Sequence record: MK599315.1 | Length of the DNA: 64,000 nucleotides | Reading direction: 5' to 3' (one strand) | Notes under the pieces: generated by a model | The model's input: the letters and a program-made list of their open reading frames with translations, nothing else | Databases searched by the model: none | What the model was told of the DNA's origin: nothing | Made by a program: the position numbers and the translations under genes | Shown here: piece by piece, positions 2,997-57,927 of the stretch | Layout: every line of letters starts with the position of its first letter | Position numbering within the stretch: the first letter of the stretch is position 1

Positions 2997-3063
2997 TTCA
3001 AATTTCCTCTTAGGGGTTACAAAAAGCTAAACGATATGATTGTTTATATCGATGGAGTTGACC

Positions 3064-5175
3064 ATGGCTACAAAAAAGACCAAGCTGCCAAAGCCTGCTG
3101 GGATGAATGCCCAGAACAGAATTGGTGTACTTGACCTTAATGAGCTGGACGACCTGTTTGATGATGTCGGTGAAACCACCAAACCTGGTGATCCAATAAC
3201 CGATTTCAAATCTGGTCTGAAAGAGGGCTTCCTCGGTGGATTGAAAACCAAAGACATCGTAAGGAATTTCTTACGTAGCGCAGCACCTGATGGTTTCGCG
3301 CGCCTTTTTGGTGCCTATGACGATGTGATGGCTTCAGTAACCGATATCAAAGATACGGTCGAGAGAGTCAATGCGTCCGACCTAGATTACCTTGGTCGTA
3401 AAGCACAGGATTATCTACCCCAGTTAAAAGATCGCATTCCAAATGCCTTATACGAGAATATTTCTGATACACTTACCAGAAAGGTTGAGCAGTATCAGTA
3501 CGAAGTGGATTCCCAAAGGGACCAAATCGCTATTCGTCGTCGCCGGCAAGAAAACGATGATGCAAATGTAATTAAAGCTGCACTAGATCAGAATACGTTA
3601 GTAAGTAGAGAAAACTTCCAACGTAGCGAACAGGGTGCAGTTGCCCGTGCTGCTGTTGAAAGAGCAGAACGTGGAATTCGTGATAAAGTAAGTGCAGGGC
3701 GCTTTGACTTTATGTCCCGCTCGATGGGGATGGCTGTAGATAGTCTGACACGTCTTGTAGGATATAACGAACAGGTTAATTATGGAATTCAACGTAAAGG
3801 TCTTGAACTTCAATTCCGTACCTACATGGGTATTCGGGATCTTGTTAAAGTACAAGAAGCTAACCTTGAATTGCAGAATAAGGCTTATGAAGCATTAGTT
3901 CGTAATACCGGGCTACCTGACTATAAGAAAGGTAATGTTGGTGATTTAACCAGCTTCGGTTCAGGGCGCGGTCGCGGTAATATGCTCGGACGCCTAGCTG
4001 GCGGAGCTGCACAAGGCCTTCATGGTTTCTTAGGTGGTTACGGTAATAAAGTAAACGAACGTGTCGCCAGTGGCCTAGGTGGACGTCTATCAGAGATCGT
4101 CGCTGGGTTACGTATGGGTGACATGGCTGGTTCATCCGTTTGGGATAACCGTTATAAGTTCGCTGGTCAAATCGCCGGTGAATACGGGGCAGATATCCTT
4201 AAGTCGTCTATTGTTCCATGGGCAGGTCGTAAAGTTCGTCCAACTATGGAAAAACTATCCAACCGTTTTGGTGGACGACATCATCAGGTTGGTTATGCCC
4301 TAGATAACGTTCCAGCATATTTGCAAGAGTTCGTTAATAACTATCAAAACACTTATGGTTTCCGTGGAGTTATCCGCGATGCTATTATGCCATTCGTTCC
4401 TCAGTATCACCTGAATGATCGTCTGGAAAACGGAAACTATCAAACAATTGATCAAGGCGCGGCCTTTAACCAATTGACACAGCGTAGTATCGTTGAAGTC
4501 ATCCCTGGTTACTTGTCTCGTCAGCTTCAAGAATTGCGAATGATTCGTACTGGTCGCGATGATATCGAGCGTGAAGTATTCGATATTACAACTGGTCGAT
4601 TCGAAGTTCAATCGCTGTCGGATGATCGTCTTCAGAAGAAGATTATTCCAGCAGCTGCGATTCGAAGTGCTAGTGGTGCTATTAACGACACATTGAATTT
4701 GATGGACGAAGAAGGTAAACTTTCTCCAGCTGCACGTAAGGCACTTGGGGAACGTATGCTTCGAGATGCATCTACTAACCGTAGATTCGATCCAGAAGCA
4801 TACCTTAAAGCTGGCGGTTATATGGATGGCTTAGATGCCACCACCACAGATGAAATTCAAAGGTTCTTCAAGAGTAAGTTCCAGTACGACGATAAAGGTA
4901 AAATGGCGGATAACGCTGATAACCATCGTCTACGTGATGAATACTCGCGTGCCTTCCTCGATATTCGTTCTGTAAGTCGTGACCCAGTTAAAGAAGTACA
5001 TCGTCTAATTAATGCCGGTCAAACCGAGCCTCTTCGGATGCTTGGCATTATCATTACTGAACAAGGTCAAGATAGAATAAACTATAACCGTATTTGGGAA
5101 ATCATGCGCTCCGGCGTGACTGATACAAACCCATGGTTAATGGTGACTATCAACCTGAAGCTTCTGGTGATATGA
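3064..5175 (+). CDS. Tail-associated/tape-measure-like protein, N-terminal part (phiKZ gp181-like); frameshifted relative to 5133..9833
   Basis: ATG 3064 with GGAG SD; helical, G/A-rich; overlaps the next ORF in the -1 frame. The joined length is 2256 aa, close to gp181 size. Confidence 0.75.
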   Translation: MATKKTKLPKPAGMNAQNRIGVLDLNELDDLFDDVGETTKPGDPITDFKSGLKEGFLGGLKTKDIVRNFLRSAAPDGFARLFGAYDDVMASVTDIKDTVERVNASDLDYLGRKAQDYLPQLKDRIPNALYENISDTLTRKVEQYQYEVDSQRDQIAIRRRRQENDDANVIKAALDQNTLVSRENFQRSEQGAVARAAVERAERGIRDKVSAGRFDFMSRSMGMAVDSLTRLVGYNEQVNYGIQRKGLELQFRTYMGIRDLVKVQEANLELQNKAYEALVRNTGLPDYKKGNVGDLTSFGSGRGRGNMLGRLAGGAAQGLHGFLGGYGNKVNERVASGLGGRLSEIVAGLRMGDMAGSSVWDNRYKFAGQIAGEYGADILKSSIVPWAGRKVRPTMEKLSNRFGGRHHQVGYALDNVPAYLQEFVNNYQNTYGFRGVIRDAIMPFVPQYHLNDRLENGNYQTIDQGAAFNQLTQRSIVEVIPGYLSRQLQELRMIRTGRDDIEREVFDITTGRFEVQSLSDDRLQKKIIPAAAIRSASGAINDTLNLMDEEGKLSPAARKALGERMLRDASTNRRFDPEAYLKAGGYMDGLDATTTDEIQRFFKSKFQYDDKGKMADNADNHRLRDEYSRAFLDIRSVSRDPVKEVHRLINAGQTEPLRMLGIIITEQGQDRINYNRIWEIMRSGVTDTNPWLMVTINLKLLVI

Positions 5176-8100
5176 ATGATAAGAACTTCTTTGGTCCTGC
5201 TTACCCAGGTGCAGCTAAAGCCAATGCGCTTAATGCAATGCACCGCTTCCGGAATAAGCATGCTCCACAGGAAGATCGAATCAAGAAAGAACTATCGCGC
5301 TATAGCCGTATTGCTCAAGGTAAATTCCAGTACTTGAACAATAAACACGGTGCCGGTATCCAAGACTTTGCTAACAACATGCGAAATGGCCAATTTGGTC
5401 CTTACGTAGCTGGTCTGCAAGGAGCTTGGAATAATGCGGGTATTATGAGTCAAGATCTCTATTCTAAGACACGTGCTAAGTTTGGAGAACACATGGATCA
5501 GTTCCAGAATGATCCAACCCAATATGCAATCGGTCAGAAAGATAAGATCATTGATGTGTTCACAAAGTTTAATCCAAATGAACCCATCATTAAAGGTATT
5601 GATTTTGTTCAAGGTAACCTTGTTGACTTTAATACCAAAAAGATTATCGAATCTGTACACGACATTACCGGTAAGGTTGTTTCTACAACTGGCATGACGG
5701 TTCTAACAGCATCTGAAGTTGCACAAGGTCTGTTTGATAAGAAAGGAATGCGTCTTGAATTACCTGCCTTCATGAGCAACGCAGCGGATAAAATCCGCGG
5801 TGCTTTAATGGGTGGACAAACGCCTCCTGCTCAACAGTTTGCTGAAGGTGAAAACGCACAGCAAAAACAAGCAGCTGAAGATGATAAGCACGACTGGTAT
5901 TTGGATGGTGAGCAAGAACCCACTATCTCTGCTCGTGGTCTAAAGAACGGTGAATACTTCAACGCAGATGGTGACCAGATTAATTCGATGCAAGACATCA
6001 AAGGTGATGTACTTGATAAGAATGGATCTATTATCGCAACTGCTAAGGAACTAGCTTCCGGTCTATGGTCGCGTGCTACTCGTAAACGTTGGCGTCTTAC
6101 CAAGACAGGTCGGCGTCTAGCAAATGTAGCGGGTTGGGGTGCCAAGTTCATGGCAACGAATACATCTACCTTAGCGTGGAACGCACTGAAGTTTGGTGCT
6201 AAGACAGCGATCGGTATGGGTTCGGCCCTATTCAACTTCGCGATTGAAACTCAGAACGCTTATTTACCTGGTGATGATGTACCTGTACTCGAACGAAGAC
6301 TAGTTAATGCTGGTAAGTACTTCGATGATAAAGGTCGCGTCATTGAAAACTTTGGTGATGTGTATGGCACGATCTTTAACGAGAGAGGCGAACCTGTAAT
6401 AGAACCATCTCTGTATAAAGACCTTAAGAACTACGACGGTACCAAACATATCTTAGCTAAGAATAAAGGTATCATCCGTAAGACTGTATGGCGTGGTATT
6501 CGCGCTGCTCGTTCGAAGTATATCGATGCTTCCATGAAGTACATGGGTTGGGCATTGAAGAAGACGGGTAAGTTCTATGGAGGTGCAGCTAAGAAAGTGT
6601 TAGGTGGTTTCGCTAAAGCGGGTGGTAACGTTCTTGGACGTATCTTTGAACGCGTACCATACGAAGACTTCGAAACAACTGATCAAGTACTATTGGGTCG
6701 CATTCTTGAAACTCTTCAAGCACAAGTTCCAGAAAAGCTCCGGGCTGGTAGTTGGCAGGATAAAGCAGAAAAGGCCAAAGAAGGCGCTGCTGGCTTGATG
6801 GATAAATTGAAGGGTAAGGGAGATGGCGATACTGGTAAAGCTGAAAATAAAGTCCTGAAGGGATTGTCAGATGGACTTAAAGGTATCTTCAGTAAACTTA
6901 CCGGTACAGAAGGTGAAGAAGGCTCTGGTGCGTTCGACGTGCTGATGGGCGGTGGTATGAAAGGTGGCGCTAAAGGTCGTTTAATGGGCCTTGCTAAACG
7001 CGCAGTTCCTTGGATACTTGGTGGTACAGCTGCCGCAGTGGGTACAGGTGCTATGGCTTATGGTTATAGCAAAGATGGAATGGATGCAAAGCAGACAGGT
7101 ATTCTGACTGCAATGAGTCTTAATCCACTTGGACAATTAACTGCTCGCTATATCCTGAAACCTATCTTTGGTCAGATGAACGATCAAAGAGCAGAGTTCC
7201 GCCGACTCAGAATGCTACAGTACGGTATTACCGATCACGATCAACAACAGAAAGTTTCTGCACTTGAAGATGCTTTTGATCGCGTAACCGAACGGACAGA
7301 AGAACCCGACTTTAATATCAGTGGAGTTGGTGGTAAGGCTATTCTTGATATTCTTGGCATCGATGTTAAGAATGAAGTTCAAGTAATGCGTATGTCCCGC
7401 TGGTTGGAAATGCGTTTCCGTCCGGTCTTCTTGACTTGGGTTAAAGCACTAGCTAAACTCAAAAAGAATGAAGTCAAACTCGTTGACATTGATAGTAAGT
7501 TCCCTCAAGAATTGAAAGGACCATTAGTTAAAGCTGTTAAGATTTCTGTATCGGGTGATACACCAATGCAGTATCGTGTTGACCCATTCTCCGAAGAAGG
7601 CGAATTGGAAGACACTATCCCAGCAGCTGATCAACTTTGGAAAGCTCTATACGTTCGTTATAAAGCGGGCGAGAAGAAAGATGATACGGTACCTGCTACA
7701 GCGGCTAATACCGAAGTAGCTACCAAAGCTCAGGATATCGCCAAGAAAGCGGCAGATACAGCAACTGGTAAAACTGCACCGAGTCCAATGGATCCTACTA
7801 AGTCAGCAATGCCCTTGGCTGCTGCTAAGAAGGCTTTCCCTGGTCTGGGTGGTTCAACAGGTGCTCCAATCGTTGCGACTTCGGCAGCTACTACTAAGCT
7901 AACTGCACTCCAATCCATCCGGATGCGTGCCTACGGTTTGGAAGTACTGAGTTTCTACAACGTCTATCCTCTTCTCAATGCTGAAGCAATGGTATTCGAT
8001 GGTCTATCTATTCAGGGCGGTGTTCCTGAATTCCGTGGTGACCTAGAATCGATCATGCAGGAAACAGCACCGTTATTTGGTAAAGATATCGTTGGTAACG

Positions 8101-9833
8101 ATGAGGATCGTTCTGCCTATTACGATTGGTTCGTTGGTCGTTTCATGCCTGTTGCTCGTGCTTACTACGGTGCAATGCGTAATTCGACTCAAGGAACAAC
8201 CATTGCGAACATGGAATCTAAACTCAAACCCAGTGATGCTGTTATTGTGGGTAATGCCGTATTGGGCGTCACTAATTGGGACGGCTCTAGTGTATGGCAG
8301 GTTGATTCTATCTTCCCGATTAAGGGTAGCAAAGACGATCTCAAGAAAATGGCTGAAGCTGATTTGGAACAATTGAAGAAAGATGCAAGCAAAGACATCA
8401 TGTCTACGCCGACTCAATCTGCGGGTGACCAAGCAGCTGGAACACAAAACGCAGCCGCTGGTGGTAGCTTTGCCGAGAGGGCAATGGCTTCTATCTCGAA
8501 TACTTGGGAGTCTGCTAAAGAAACAGTAAGTAACGCATGGAGTAATACCAAGGCAGCTGGCGCTAAAGCAATGGATTATGTATCCGACGCTGCGGCGAAC
8601 ACACAGTACAAACTTGGTATGGCTGGCGAGGTATCTGCAACAGGTCGTACATACGGAACCCTGACAAAGGGTAACGGTGGAGCTTGGGAACAGATTCCAT
8701 ATCCGAAAGCCAATAAGTCTCGTCAAGCAGCTGCTGAAACATTCCAAGCAGTTGCAGCGATGGTCGGTATTCCAGTAGAACTTCTGTTCATCTTCGCATC
8801 GCTTGAGTCTGGTTTTGATTACACCGTCAAAGCTAAGACATCGTCTGCAACCGGATGGTTCCAGTTTATTAATAGTACCTGGGACGCAATGTTGGCGAAA
8901 CATGGCTCCAAGTTCGGTATTCCTCCAGACGACGCCCAACGTAGTTTACGTGTTGATCCTCGGATCAACGCCTTAATGGGTGCATGCTTCCTTAAAGATA
9001 ACTACACCTACCTTAAAGATGCATTAGGACGCGATCCAACAGACGTAGATCTTTACATCGCTCACTTCATGGGACCAGGTGGTGCACGTAAGTTCTTGAC
9101 TCGTAATCAGGATACCATCGGCGCATCGGTCTTCCCTGAAGCAGCATCTGCTAACCGACCGATCTTCTACAAGAAAGGTGGACAACCTCGTACTCTCGGG
9201 GAAATCTATCAAATGTTCGAAGAGAAGATTGCAAAGCATCGTGGTGGAGCTGAAGGTAGTTCTGTAGCTACACAGGAAGCGGGTAAAACCATGACTCCGG
9301 AAGAGGCGACAGAAGAACAAGCCAAGGCTAATGCTAAGGCGTCTGCTGCCGAACTTTGGAATACTGATGATAGTAACAATGCTGGTAATGCAGCGGTTGC
9401 TCGTGAAGAAGCATACAGTGCCACTGGTACTGCTGCCCAAACACCGGTACTTCCTGGTATTACTCCAATGAACCCCGTGGGTGGAACAACTACTAGCGGA
9501 ACTAATCCATCTGCTGATAGTGGCGGTAATGTTATCCAAGCCCAACAAGAAGCAGCTCTTCAAGCAGCACAGCAACAGAACTCGACTCGTCAAGCTGAAG
9601 TACGTCGTAATAACGAGAAGGCTCAACAGATCGATGATATCCAAGCTGAGCAGCTTAAGACGCTAATTGAGATGCGTGATCATCTCAAGCGTTTGGTACA
9701 ACTGAACGAACAAAAGGACAGTAGTATCAAAGAAGCTTCGAAAACCCAAGCCGGAGGAAATAATAGTATGACCTCCACGTTAATGAGAACGACCGCGGCT
9801 CAAAATCGCCCGTCACCCCTCTCGTTAACTTAA
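5133..9833 (+). CDS. gp181-like tail protein, C-terminal part with SLT lytic transglycosylase domain
   Basis: Catalytic [21 protein letters not shown] and [12 protein letters not shown] motifs of the lysozyme-like SLT fold; position next to vRNAP genes. Confidence 0.88.
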
Positions 9834-9888: not shown

Positions 9889-11865
9889 ATGGCAACAGAT
9901 GTTAAGCCCATTTGGTTGCGCCAAGCTTTCTTATTACCTATTAATGACAATAAGAACTCGTATGGTTCTCAGACCAAACGGCGTTACGCTAACTCGGCTG
10001 CTTTCAAATTTACAAATACGTCGTTGGGTGGTAGTTTCGCTATTAACCCTCTCCCACAATACACACGCTATGCTGATATCCGTCAGCCTGGTCGTGGTCG
10101 TACCTATGAAGATCGTTTCTTAGGTATGGGTCGTTACTATTCGGAAGCACATGACGATACTAAACAAGAAGTACACATGTCGTTTGGTGTTCCACGTTAT
10201 TCGAGTTGGACCTCGTTCTTCACGAACTTCTATGATCGTTCAGCTGCTGGTTTAGCTAATACCGGCGTTACATCCGATCTTTGGTACAACCTTGGTAACG
10301 TAACAGGTTATTTCATCACCCTGCCCCTTCAACCATTTATTCTTGGGGTAACTGGCGTATCTCGTGTTATTAGCTTCTTGACTAAATCGCAGCCTTCTAA
10401 GTGGTTCTATTTTAAACCAACTATGCACGCATACTGGTCGTCTGTGAATACATTGGCTAACGAGTTCGCCATCGCCCTGGGTATGGTTCCTCGTATTCTA
10501 GATGATTCTCAGCGGCCATTAGAAGACCCAGGCCACCGGGTAGGGTTAGATGACGTTAAGCGAATGCATGAAATCTTCCCAGGTTTCTTCCGTCCAGATG
10601 GCGGTGTCGATGTAATGTCTTTGGCTGGCCGTACGCAGCGCATGTCAGACCAAGCTCAAAAATCAATGCGAGCAATGGCTGAGAAAGCACGTACCTTAGC
10701 AGAACTCCGGGCAGGTATCGAATCTGAAATGGCTAAAGCTGTAACAGACCCTAAACCTGGAGCAGATGCGCGTGATTATTTCTTGAAGTATTTAGAAGCA
10801 GATAAGAAACCATCCGAGAAGAATGGTGTTATCGATACTGAAAGTTTTAGCAGCTGGGGCGAGTTGAAGAACGTGTACGACTTCGTTGTAGGTGCACAGC
10901 GGGATGGTTCTCAGTTCGTTACATTCCGTGTCGACTATAATGGCGAAGTATCCGAATCCTTTACTAACACTACACGTGATGTGGGTGTTGTACAAACCTT
11001 GAATACGAAAGTAGGTGAGGGTCGCGCAGCATCGTTTGACTTCATGGGTGGTAATATCACTGAAGGTGTTGGTGCTGTTACGGATATGCTTAAAGGATTT
11101 ATTTCAGGAGCACTAGACTCTGTTAACTTATCCGGTCTTGAGACTTTGGCTGGCGCAGCTTTCGTTGATGCACCTGAGTACTGGGAATCGGCAATGGCGT
11201 CCTTGCCATCTGCTTCGTATACTGTTCAATTGATCTCTCCTTATGGAAATAAAATATCCAGGTTCATGAACATATACGTACCACTAGCCATGATTCTCCC
11301 AATGGGATTACCAAGGTCAGCTGGTCGAAGTGCTTACACCTCTCCGTTCATCTGTCAGATTTTCCATAAAGGTCGAGTACAGAGACAATTGGGGATCGTG
11401 GATAGCATTCAAATCCGTCGTGGTGTCGGTAACGTTGGTTGGAACGCAGAACACGAAATGCTTGGTTGCGAAGTAACCTTTAGTGTTAAAGACCTATCTA
11501 AGTTAATGCATATCCCACTGAAGGCTGGCTTCGCTAGTCCAAGTTGGTTGGGTACTGCTGGTCGTGCTATTTCTGCTACAGCTGGTGAAGCCGTTGCTGG
11601 CGATGGTGGTATTGCTACTGCGCTTGCTCTTACTGACGGAGCGGTGTGGGATGAACAAAGTCTGTTCCAAGATTACGTGTCGACTCTAACATCGCAATCG
11701 TGGGCAGATTTCTATTACGCTGGTAAACGTTTGAATCTTAACCTGACTCGTGCAGTTCAAAGTTTCAAGTCCTGGCGTAGTCCTTCGAACCTAATGTCTT
11801 GGGTTCTCGATGGTGAGGTCGCCCGTACGGTCTCTGCCTTCGCTCAAACTTCTGATCGCTTTTAA
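9889..11865 (+). CDS. Virion structural protein, probable baseplate/hub (phiKZ gp182-like)
   Basis: 658 aa ORF with SD, directly after the gp181-like gene; C-terminal beta-rich segment ([10 protein letters not shown]...[11 protein letters not shown]). Call is mainly by synteny. Confidence 0.6.
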
Positions 11866-11881
11866 TACAGGAAACGCAATA

Positions 11882-12352
11882 ATGTCTATCATTCGCAAAA
11901 TCGCTCTGAAACTCCTTGGTGTTGAATCCGTACTGGAACTGGCCCGTTCTGAAATTAAAGGTAATGACCTGGCTCAGCTCGCATCGACTCTTCCGGTTGA
12001 TACTCTGACCAATCTGTTGGTTGGTAAGTCCGGCGTTCGTAACTTCGCCGAACTGGCTACCGGTTATCTGGAAGCTGAACAGTATCGTGGACAGAACCTG
12101 GAAGCTGAACTGCGTAAACTAGTTCGTAAATACACCGCTGGTGCACGCATCAATGCGTCCATTGAAAATATCGCAGTCAATGCCCTGATTGGTGGTGTGG
12201 CTGAAGTTGAAAACAGTAAGGAACGCAATATTCTGAAGCGTAAGGCCGCTGCCATGGCGACTATTCGTGCACAGATGCCGGGTATCGCTAAAGCTGACGG
12301 TAACTACGCTGTAGAACTGCTTCTGCAAATTGTTAAAGTCCGCTACTCTTAA
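11882..12352 (+). CDS. Hypothetical helical protein
   Basis: ATG 11882 with AGGA SD; highly expressed codon style. Confidence 0.7.
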   Translation: MSIIRKIALKLLGVESVLELARSEIKGNDLAQLASTLPVDTLTNLLVGKSGVRNFAELATGYLEAEQYRGQNLEAELRKLVRKYTAGARINASIENIAVNALIGGVAEVENSKERNILKRKAAAMATIRAQMPGIAKADGNYAVELLLQIVKVRYS

Positions 12353-12361
12353 GGTGAACTG

Positions 12362-12943
12362 ATGAAAGGTCTGGACTGGGCTCTCAGCGTAGAGAGTCAA
12401 GATGGTGTCGCCCAACAGGTAGACGCTAGTAACGTTGAATCCGAAACCGAGGTTAAAGATCTCGATCAAGGTAATCTGGATGTGGATAATGCTAACGCTG
12501 AATCCCAACCGGATGATGTTAAGGCTAGTACCACTGTAGACATCTCTGTTGAACAACTGGAAGATGGTCAGGTGTCTGGTAGTTCTGGTGGTAAGACGAT
12601 CGATGCTTACGGCGTTGATGAACTGTCCGGCGCACCGAAGCGTATTGTAATCTCTGGTTTTGATGCTTCTACTAACAAAGCTGCTGAACCCGGTGATAAC
12701 AAACTGGAACTGGTTATTCTACTTCAAAATGGAGTAATCCCAGAAGTTGGTATTAATGGGGTAACCGTAGAAGATCTACTGACAGCTTCGATCATTGTAT
12801 TCGAAGGTTTCCAATCGGGTAAGTTTGCCTGTGAAGAAAATGCCAAAGCATTGTTCCACATGAACGCTGCACGTGAACTGATTCGTGCTCGACTGGAGCG
12901 TCGTCAAGCACAAGGCACTGAAGGTACCTACGAGGGTAACTAA
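12362..12943 (+). CDS. tad1: Tad1-family cyclic-nucleotide/gcADPR sponge domain with an acidic N-terminal extension
   Basis: Residues ~120-193 (LQNGVIPEVGINGVTVEDLL...FQSGKFACEENAKALFHMNAA...R..RR...GTEGT) match the recalled Tad1 pattern FQxG...GV...DLL...FQxGxFxxxENAxALxH...R..R...GT. Confidence 0.8.
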   Translation: MKGLDWALSVESQDGVAQQVDASNVESETEVKDLDQGNLDVDNANAESQPDDVKASTTVDISVEQLEDGQVSGSSGGKTIDAYGVDELSGAPKRIVISGFDASTNKAAEPGDNKLELVILLQNGVIPEVGINGVTVEDLLTASIIVFEGFQSGKFACEENAKALFHMNAARELIRARLERRQAQGTEGTYEGN

Positions 12944-12950
12944 TATAAAT

Positions 12951-12973
12951 GCCTCCCTTCGGGGAGGCTTTAT
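12951..12973 (+). terminator. Intrinsic terminator
   Basis: GCCTCCC-TTCG-GGGAGGC-TTTAT. Confidence 0.8.
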
Positions 12974-12981
12974 GTTCCATT

Positions 12982-13006
12982 AAAAAATATTTCAAATCTA
13001 TATCAC
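12982..13006 (+). promoter_or_regulatory. phiKZ-type early promoter
   Basis: AAAAAATATTTCAAATCTATATCAC, one mismatch to TATATTAC; sits just after a terminator. Confidence 0.65.
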
Positions 13007-13114
13007 AGGTATGCACTAGAGATTAACATCTTGAGGGCATTACCATGTAACAGCTAACACAATATCCATTCGCGAGAATGACAAGTTAATTCCTTTAATT
13101 GAAGGTAGTAAAAA

Positions 13115-13609
13115 ATGAAAGAACAAAACATCGACCACAATAAACCTTATACTTACGTGGTCAGTGATTCCGAAGGCAACATGCGTGTACTGACTACTCT
13201 CGGTGACGAGCTACAAGTGCAGATCGACTATGCCGTGGGCACGGGAGGCAAAGCCAAAGTAGAACACATTGAAGAAGGTATTCGTGGCCTGTGCCATTCG
13301 TCTACCTCCACTCGTCTGCTCCGTGCAACTGTTCCAGGTTTCTACAAGATGCTTGAAGGCATCATGGGTAAGATCGGTCGTGCAATGGCCGAACCCGAGA
13401 ACTGGACAACTGGTAACAATGGTCGTCTGGCCTTCCATATCGAGACTCTGTTCGGAGCCGATAAGAAGTTCTGGCCGTTGATCACCCAAAGCGTTTACGA
13501 ACGTCTGCAATATGACGGTTACGTCAGCGTGGATGTACAGGTAGCGGAAGACGAAGAACAACCTATCAAGTTGGTCACTCGCTTTGGTATTCCTGCTCGC
13601 ATGGTCTAA
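13115..13609 (+). CDS. Hypothetical protein (early operon)
   Basis: ORF with GAAGG SD downstream of an early-promoter motif. Confidence 0.75.
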   Translation: MKEQNIDHNKPYTYVVSDSEGNMRVLTTLGDELQVQIDYAVGTGGKAKVEHIEEGIRGLCHSSTSTRLLRATVPGFYKMLEGIMGKIGRAMAEPENWTTGNNGRLAFHIETLFGADKKFWPLITQSVYERLQYDGYVSVDVQVAEDEEQPIKLVTRFGIPARMV

Positions 13610-13618
13610 GGAATCGTT

Positions 13619-13819
13619 ATGGCTCTCTCTGATTGCTCCTGTTGTTGGGAAACTCCATGTCATGCTGGTGGAGCGAAGTTCGATGAGTCGGATATGCGCA
13701 TGATGCCACTACCGCGACTTGGAGAGCTGGTTGCAATGTCCAGGCGTATCTTCGATGAGCGTAATACAATGGCTTCTCTTACAGCCTCTCATGATCGTAA
13801 GGAACTTACGGTAGAGTAG
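13619..13819 (+). CDS. Small hypothetical protein
   Basis: AGGA SD; fills the gap in the operon. Confidence 0.5.
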   Translation: MALSDCSCCWETPCHAGGAKFDESDMRMMPLPRLGELVAMSRRIFDERNTMASLTASHDRKELTVE

Positions 13820-13878
13820 GTTGTATTTGAACCATCCCTCAAAATAAACACATCAAACTTTCACAAGGAAATACTCAC

Positions 13879-14298
13879 ATGTCTAAAGATCTGAAGAGCT
13901 TTGCATTCATCGAAGAACACAAACTTCGCGAGAAGGTTATTCTTGGTGAAGCCAATACTTTCGACATCCCGAACGACCTCTATGAATCGGTAGTTCTGGG
14001 TGGAGCTGGTATCAGCCTTGAGCAACTGAAGAAGAAAGAACGACTGGAAGGTGAACTCCTGGCAGGCGTTACTCTTGTTGCTGGTGAACAAGCTGCAACT
14101 CGCATGAAAGAAAATCCGGATCTTTCTGAGATCGGCTTTAACTACAACATGGGTACCACTAACTCTCAGGTTGCTGGTATCTTCAGTCGCGATGGTAAGG
14201 ACCACAGTGTTGTTACTGTATCGACCAAGACCAACTCCGCTGAAATGAAGCGTGTCTGTGCACACATCAATCAGCTATTCGAAGAAGTAAATACCTGA
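13879..14298 (+). CDS. Hypothetical protein
   Basis: AAGGA SD, strong codon bias, followed by a hairpin. Confidence 0.8.
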   Translation: MSKDLKSFAFIEEHKLREKVILGEANTFDIPNDLYESVVLGGAGISLEQLKKKERLEGELLAGVTLVAGEQAATRMKENPDLSEIGFNYNMGTTNSQVAGIFSRDGKDHSVVTVSTKTNSAEMKRVCAHINQLFEEVNT

Positions 14299-30066: not shown

Positions 30067-30091
30067 AAAAATTATCTTACATCTATATTAC
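30067..30091 (+). promoter_or_regulatory. phiKZ-type early promoter
   Basis: AAAAATTATCTTACATCTATATTAC at the divergent start of a plus-strand operon. Confidence 0.75.
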
Positions 30092-38032: not shown

Positions 38033-38121
38033 TTTATTAAGGTGGTTTGGTTTACATTTAAGCCTTTTTAAAGGCTATATTACAAATGTGAACTACAAAC
38101 CACCAATAGGAGAATACAAGC

Positions 38122-57902: not shown

Positions 57903-57927
57903 AAAAAAGATTTCAAATCTATATTAC
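57903..57927 (+). promoter_or_regulatory. phiKZ-type early promoter
   Basis: AAAAAAGATTTCAAATCTATATTAC after a terminator. Confidence 0.75.

Follow-up and report, generated by a model that had tools for sequence, protein, structure and literature searches.

We describe here a gene of Pseudomonas phage PA1C (MK599315.1, 304.7 kb) that almost certainly encodes a Tad1-family protein orthologous to gp184 of phage phiKZ. It lies on the + strand at positions 12362-12943 of the window, i.e., the whole stretch of 64,000 nucleotides that was analysed, the first base of which is base 186001 of the record; all coordinates below are those of the window unless the record is named. Across 11000-14000 the window is 100% identical to PA1C, and its identity to phiLBG22 and to PS119XW, of the genus Pawinskivirus, is 99.8%. 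The product of the gene is PA1C QBX32373.1, which is labelled 'hypothetical protein' in PA1C and PS119XW. An initial annotation, made from the letters alone, had proposed at this place a Tad1-like sponge of immune signals that is made late, packaged in the virion, matured by proteolysis and injected. The open reading frame (ORF) on which that proposal was built is real, being an ATG-started frame of 193 residues with a Shine-Dalgarno sequence; the position of this sequence on the stop codon of the preceding gene suggests translational coupling in the operon. The gene and its parts are as follows.

12351..12356, + strand: Shine-Dalgarno-like AAGGTG, 5 nt 5' of the ATG and overlapping the stop codon of the gp183-like gene (read from the sequence)
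12362..12943, + strand: Tad1-family gene, stop included, 193 amino acids, ATG start (ORF and translation)
12362..12394, + strand: N-terminal motif, residues 1-11 (W6; S-V-E ending at E11), a candidate head-targeting peptide and putative first protease site
12395..12553, + strand: acidic linker, residues 12-64, predicted to be disordered and ending in S-V-E (62-64), the predicted maturation site
12554..12940, + strand: predicted mature product, residues 65-193, 129 amino acids, about the size of free-standing Tad1 proteins
12593-12931, + strand: folded Tad1 core, residues 78-190 (AlphaFold model, Foldseek)

The Tad1 domain and its predicted ligands

A phmmer search against all Protein Data Bank (PDB) chain sequences matched seven sequences and nothing besides: phiKZ gp184 (8y6v_I; E 2e-36, residues 75-193), CmTad1 (8kbb_A; E 1e-7), and the CbTad1 chains 7uav, 8kbe, 8kbg and 8kbh (E about 7e-3 to 9e-3). 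The identity between the Tad1 domain and phiKZ gp184 is 55% over residues 77-193. The Tad1 likeness that the initial annotation had seen in residues ~78-193 was thus returned by phmmer, and by Foldseek as well (below); the positions that it gave for the motifs are right, and only the spacing of 'SGA..I.I' was misread, since SGA is followed by three residues and then by I.I. In the translation, FQSGKFACEENAKALFH occupies residues 150-166 and R..RR...GTEGT residues 177-189.

The fold tells the same. An AlphaFold2 model of the 193-residue protein, with 45 homologues as input, is confident over residues 78-190 (predicted local distance difference test score, pLDDT, 86-95 by block), with strands at 79-83, 94-98 and 116-121 and helices at 136-152 and 158-184, which matches the Tad1 plan of an N-terminal antiparallel β-sheet followed by two long C-terminal helices. 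When this model was compared with the PDB by Foldseek, ranks 1-20 were all Tad1 (E 6e-7 to 1e-5, probability 1.00, target template modelling score 0.65-0.76) and rank 21 had an E value of 0.33. A fold search of BFVD returned QBX32373.1 itself, the phiKZ-type protein of 230 residues, and proteins named 'Acb2/Tad1 hairpin domain-containing'; the homologues bear a precomputed PF24729 tag, and PF24729 is named Acb2/Tad1 hairpin domain in a preprint. Pfam-A scans of the protein, its C-terminal domain and four relatives gave no meaningful family, but the local library evidently does not hold PF24729, so this result is not evidence. The PADLOC scan returned nothing, as is expected for an anti-defence gene, and three PHROGs families were matched, all of unknown function. 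One NCBIfam match, to nitrosocyanin, was rejected as spurious (22.8 bits against a cut-off of 142.85).

With the free-standing CbTad1 (7UAV, 7UAW, 8SMD) and CmTad1 (8KBB-8KBD), the PA1C protein has in common the fold, the pocket for gcADPR and cyclic dinucleotides, and the C-terminal lid; it differs in its low identity (~26%), in its N-terminal extension of 75 residues, and in an R/T pair that is replaced by E158 and F165. In CbTad1, F82, N92, R109 and R113 form the pocket for gcADPR and 2',3'-cGAMP, and mutation disrupts the binding of both (Li et al. preprint). All four counterparts in the HMMER alignment, F150, N160, R177 and R181, are kept in the PA1C protein; please note that the offsets between chain-index and author numbering were checked on CbTad1 R57 and L119 and on CmTad1 C87, M92, W103 and K106. 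Of 199 relatives, 193 have F or Y at position 150, all have N at position 160, and 196 and 195 have R at positions 177 and 181, respectively; the C-terminal lid motif G-T-E-G-T is also conserved, and almost invariant in the family. We infer that the PA1C protein would be a sponge of gcADPR, possibly one that binds cyclic dinucleotides too.

The case is different for cyclic trinucleotides. The residues that bind these ligands and hold the hexamer together are R90 and T97 in CbTad1 and R88 and T95 in CmTad1 (Li et al. preprint); in the PA1C protein this Arg and Thr are replaced by E158 and F165 (HMMER alignment), and the other hexamer-interface positions of CmTad1, K96, Q98, E99, M102, W103 and K106, are likewise not kept. 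The initial annotation had counted cyclic trinucleotides of CBASS among the ligands, and this part of it is doubtful, the two residues responsible in the solved Tad1 proteins being replaced. Only 15 of the 199 relatives have R at position 158, and nine have R together with T or S at position 165; the trinucleotide site is therefore a trait of some Tad1 proteins only, and its loss limits the predicted range of ligands, not the membership of the family. Judged from these replacements, binding of cA3 or other cyclic trinucleotides by the PA1C protein is probably absent or weak, and its oligomeric state may differ from that of the solved Tad1 proteins. The phiKZ nlp1 mutant, which retains gp184, is sensitive to a CBASS that signals by cA3, and Acb2, a sponge of cA3, rescues it; this sensitivity agrees, indirectly, with a lost trinucleotide site. 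Acb2 is also a small phage sponge of cyclic nucleotides with a related helical hairpin (PF24729), but it binds cyclic trinucleotides in a hexamer (Li et al. preprint), a feature seemingly lost in the PA1C protein; Acb2 was not returned by any sequence or fold search that we made.

A HMMER scan of 1.84 billion representatives found 1870 relatives at E <= 0.001; homologues reach E 1e-116. In 121 of the best 150 of these 1870, the Tad1 domain is at the extreme C-terminus, a position that fits a free C-terminal lid. N-terminal extensions of at least 50 residues occur in 55 of the best 150 (37%); they are of many unrelated kinds, up to 474 residues long, and since extensions are so common in the family, an extension alone is no proof of packaging. 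Four of the relatives (P0074, P0093, P0086 and P0060; 346-591 residues) have a similar 'VPVYR'-like motif in their first 25 residues and a C-terminal Tad1 domain, which suggests that the domain has repeatedly been fused to some larger module. Among the non-jumbo myoviruses (Bastillevirinae; Klebsiella phage Eowyn), several short proteins that resemble Tad1 are labelled 'structural protein'. Such a label, 'putative structural protein' on orf166 of Bacillus phage Bc431v3 (L004 2366-2746), was considered as evidence of packaging and set aside: it was given by similarity, and the neighbours of that gene are recombination and sigma-factor genes.

The N-terminal extension compared with phiKZ gp184

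The published record on phiKZ gp184 is considerable. Within the inner vertex-binding complex it is a minor capsid protein that fills the space left by gp86 and hexamer subunit d, and one end of its resolved portion is near a known cleavage site (PMC11297242); the same paper cites the gp175 cleavage sites of gp184 as verified earlier. Its interaction with inner-body proteins has been reported, and its injection validated with FLAG-tagged virions on gentamicin-treated, i.e., translation-blocked, cells (PMC10449902). The protein has been named Tad1 and described as injected, and orf184 tolerates transposon insertions, being non-essential by transposon sequencing (bioRxiv 10.1101/2025.11.23.690004). 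The only known anti-defence gene that AntiDefenseFinder reports in phiKZ is Tad1 (PMC11724313), and a 2026 review (PMC13282480) states that phiKZ injects Tad1, which blocks CBASS and Thoeris, with a citation of Li et al., Nature 635:719, 2024. The initial annotation had asked whether its proposal was already reported for the phiKZ orthologue, and the answer is yes: gp184 is published as processed, injected and Tad1, so the concept of a packaged sponge is already known and is not new here. It is for phiKZ only that others have shown the protein to be in the virion, cut by a protease, injected and a Tad1. The packaged, matured and injected sponge of the initial annotation therefore stands for phiKZ gp184 as published work, and in PA1C its packaging is argued from orthology and conserved motifs; for the PA1C protein, expression late in infection, uptake into the head, the places of cleavage, delivery into the host and the choice of ligand are predictions. 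As a member of this known kind, the PA1C protein has a delivery region that differs and is predicted to bind a smaller range of ligands.

The two proteins are syntenic at the end of the gp181-184 run and are followed by the same terminator and promoter-like block; both have an N-terminal W...S-[L/V]-E-S and an S/G-x-E before the Tad1 domain. They differ in length (230 residues in gp184, 193 in PA1C), a segment at ~55-105 with a predicted helix and β-hairpins being found in the phiKZ type only, and the PA1C extension before the Tad1 domain has a different sequence and is more acidic and disordered than that of gp184. Residues 1-75 of the PA1C protein, which the initial annotation had rightly described as an acidic extension, have a net charge of -15, 24% D+E and no Arg at all, and their pLDDT is below 50, i.e., disorder is predicted (AlphaFold).

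All three tripeptides that had been named as possible cleavage sites are present, S-V-E at 9-11, S-V-E at 62-64 and A-A-E at 107-109. The last of them is within the confidently folded domain and was rejected as an unlikely site for this reason. The other two are conserved in position: [S/G]-[L/I/V/Q]-E is found at 9-11 in 40/40 homologues that have the region, W6 is kept in 43/44, and sites near positions 11 and 64 are found in all of the 39 full-length PA1C-type homologues. The first motif (W6, S-x-E) is also found in phiKZ gp184, and E64, invariant in an alignment of 17 sequences (A1), is matched in gp184 by E108, the last residue of the G-H-E site. Mean pairwise identity among the 39 full-length homologues is 0.62 in residues 1-15, 0.51 in residues 16-61 and 0.71 in the domain, and by this measure residues 1-75 are still constrained in spite of their predicted disorder. 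An orthologue of the gp175 protease is encoded by PA1C, with 59% identity, at record positions 179442-180275, outside the window. When the starts of the other ORFs of the window were searched for a W...[S/A/G]-x-E peptide, none was found besides that of this gene, so that a signal common to the neighbouring genes is not demonstrable.

The segment that is particular to the phiKZ type deserves attention because it bears on the capsid. The phiKZ-type proteins compared (gp184, P0195, P0196, P0049, P0052 and P0041) have ~45 residues more, located after the acidic region and before the Tad1 domain, and at this place the PA1C-type proteins have a gap in the alignment. Briefly, P0195, a cluster representative 96% identical to gp184 (nine differing positions), was modelled in gp184's place; its extra segment has a predicted helix at 51-59 and short strands at 65-67, 82-85, 88-92 and 98-100, with a block pLDDT of 70-87. 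Foldseek of the P0195 model against the PDB matched 8y6v_I, which has 34 modelled residues, over 33 columns (97% identity, root-mean-square deviation 1.5 Å), and 8y6v_I is not among the matches listed for the model of the PA1C protein in the same kind of search. From the one mismatch and the β-rich, confidently modelled character of the stretch, the 34-residue capsid piece would start between gp184 residues 55 and 75; it would then be located within residues ~55-108, directly before the G-H-E (106-108) that is aligned with S-V-E 62-64 of PA1C, and such a placement agrees both with the published remark that the resolved portion has one end near a known cleavage site (PMC11297242) and with release of the Tad1 domain by cleavage.

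A probable packaged sponge and its rivals

The reading we favour, and hold to be likely, is that the PA1C orthologue of gp184 is made late, packaged, cleaved near E64 and injected, and acts as a sponge of gcADPR. The gene would be transcribed together with the structural genes gp181-184, in a unit that ends at the hairpin at 12951, and the precursor would enter the prohead through its conserved N-terminal peptide and acidic linker. A head protease of the gp175 type would cut after E64, possibly also after E11, and the freed Tad1 domain of 129 residues would be carried in the capsid and ejected with the DNA into the next host. There the domain, probably as a dimer-based oligomer, would sequester Thoeris gcADPR and possibly some cyclic dinucleotides by means of the pocket F150, N160, R177 and R181 and the C-terminal G-T-E-G-T lid, and a ThsA-type effector would be kept off ahead of any phage gene expression. 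The same delivery logic is known from T4 IPI*, a late-made anti-defence protein whose short N-terminal targeting peptide is cut off by the prohead protease at x-E; the protein is carried in the head and enters the cell with the DNA, in time to act ahead of phage gene expression. Unlike the proposed sponge of signals, IPI* works by blocking a modification-dependent restriction enzyme. Neither this protein nor its target is related to those of the PA1C proposal, the protease family member differs, and no homology is claimed.

Several points weigh against this reading. The databases label QBX32373.1 hypothetical throughout, and phiKZ does not appear in the preprint that Li et al. posted in 2023. 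The protein has 6 [S/A/G]-x-E tripeptides against 5.2 +/- 1.9 in shuffles, a number at the level of chance; the count was for this reason dropped as evidence of processing, and positional conservation alone was used. The PA1C-type proteins are without the ~45-residue segment that holds the 34 capsid-resolved residues of gp184, and so lack one of the known ways of being kept in the head. With this wall anchor missing, packaging in PA1C, if any, would depend on the acidic linker together with the N-terminal peptide, or on partners in the inner body. Finally, phiKZ has five vertex-binding complexes per vertex (PMC11297242); if one gp184 per complex is assumed, each head would hold ~60 copies, which is not much for a sponge that works stoichiometrically.

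The missing segment is also an argument for an explanation that we regard as unlikely, namely that the PA1C protein is a working cytoplasmic Tad1, made late or continuously and left unpackaged, with an extension that is no propeptide and serves, for example, solubility, regulation or the binding of a partner; the frequency of long extensions among the best 150 Tad1-like representatives is in keeping with it. Against it speak the W...S/G-x-E peptide, which is common to this protein and the packaged phiKZ protein across genera, the alignment of E64 with the gp184 site adjoining the capsid-bound fragment, and the place of the gene, which in each of the three genera comes last in a structural operon. 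Moreover, gp184 interacts with inner-body proteins (PMC10449902), so the capsid wall may not be the sole route into the head. It is considerably less probable that the protein is purely architectural, a head protein in which a Tad1-derived fold was co-opted and the sponge activity lost. This would suit the first description of gp184, only as a component of the vertex-binding complex (PMC11297242), and the hexamer and trinucleotide-site residues that are not kept. Yet the part of gp184 in the capsid wall (the 34 modelled residues of 8y6v_I) falls outside the Tad1 domain, the four pocket residues and the lid are almost invariant, which is hard to explain without ligand binding, and orf184 of phiKZ tolerates transposon insertions, so gp184 is not required for building the head. 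That the ORF is a matter of chance or was mis-called, and has no product, is suggested by the low-complexity look of residues 1-75 and by nothing more; conservation already refutes it, with homologues to E 1e-116 and 1870 representatives, the confident predicted fold, the Shine-Dalgarno sequence and the terminator also speak against it, and we consider it vanishingly improbable.

If the packaged gcADPR sponge is the right reading, it has consequences for timing. Stoichiometric sponges must be in place when the alarm molecule is made, and delivery with the DNA would solve this. With the PA1C gene, the principle known from phiKZ would reach a second lineage of those jumbo phages that form a nucleus (Pawinskivirus, phiPA3 and relatives). 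The wall-anchoring segment would be dispensable in most of the family, which separates the 'minor capsid protein' and 'cargo' roles of gp184-like proteins. The kept pocket together with the lost trinucleotide site predicts protection against Thoeris and not against CBASS that signals by cA3. Both points, on the anchor and on the ligand sites, may be useful for annotating the anti-defence content of Pseudomonas phages. More tentatively, and with a rather low expectation that it is true, we suggest that the W-x2-[S/G]-[L/I/V]-E peptide and the acidic linker could be a self-sufficient, portable signal for head targeting and release, the PA1C/phiPA3-type Tad1 then being free cargo with no wall anchor. 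If this were true, more of the N-terminally extended Tad1 proteins could be delivered by virions, and pre-loading with a sponge would be widespread and not a peculiarity of phiKZ.

Gene neighbourhood, terminator and promoter-like sequences

The gene closes a structural run, as the initial annotation had seen from its gp181-gp182-gp183 order, and it is followed by a terminator and then a promoter, which is borne out as sequence by the hairpin at 12951-12968 and the block with TATATCAC. The features around the gene are the following.

3063..9833, + strand: gp181-like large tail gene, which opens the structural run (phiKZ counterpart annotated 'tail-associated endolysin')
9889..11865, + strand: gp182 orthologue, 69% identical to phiKZ gp182 over its full length (virion structural protein in the PS119XW annotation)
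11882..12352, + strand: gp183-like gene, directly 5' and in the same operon, annotated in PS119XW and PA1C, 31% identical to phiKZ gp183 (E 7e-7)
12951..12968, + strand: intrinsic-terminator-like hairpin of 7 pairs (6 G-C) with a tetraloop, then a T run; 8 nt after the stop, closing the gp181-184 unit (scan)
12979..13012, + strand: AT-rich block ending in TATATCAC (12999-13006), phiKZ-type promoter-like element for the + strand genes downstream, which start at 13115

The order gp181-like gene, gp182, gp183, gp184, small genes and thymidylate kinase is common to PA1C/PS119XW, phiKZ and phiPA3. In phiPA3 (L003 2136-3001) two genes, 215 and 216, are located between the orthologues of gp182 and gp184, and in phiKZ and PA1C there is one (gp183-like); the stretch directly 5' of the Tad1 gene therefore varies among genera. 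The gp181-like gene is a single coding sequence of 6771 nt in PS119XW, and in PA1C it is split into two overlapping frames, annotated as two 'tail fiber protein' coding sequences; this is one frameshift relative to PS119XW and could be either a sequencing error or a genuine break. On the - strand, the ORF 1344-2996 is divergent from the gp181-184 run, as in phiKZ, and is the apparent counterpart of phiKZ gp180; it is annotated as a putative RNA polymerase beta subunit in PA1C, and gp180 as a structural head protein in phiKZ.

The hairpin, T run and AT-rich block are kept in PA1C, phiKZ and phiPA3 within flanking DNA that has otherwise diverged, and the hairpin stem of phiPA3 has compensatory changes. 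A table in PMC7058600 gives TATATTAC as the phiKZ promoter motif, from which the TATATCAC octamer differs by one base, and the longer 201phi2-1 consensus of the same table matches the AT-rich block. A promoter-like 17-mer ending in TATAT[C/T]AC occurs in 4 copies in the window (0.55 expected), all on the + strand:

12990-13006, + strand: 17-mer within the AT-rich block after the Tad1-family gene
30075-30091, + strand: 17-mer in an intergenic gap, ~40 nt 5' of a + strand gene
38067-38083, + strand: 17-mer
57911-57927, + strand: 17-mer identical to the copy at 12990, ~40 nt inside the start of a listed + strand ORF

These four 17-mers look like promoters of the phiKZ type, and they could serve to map the transcription units of the window.

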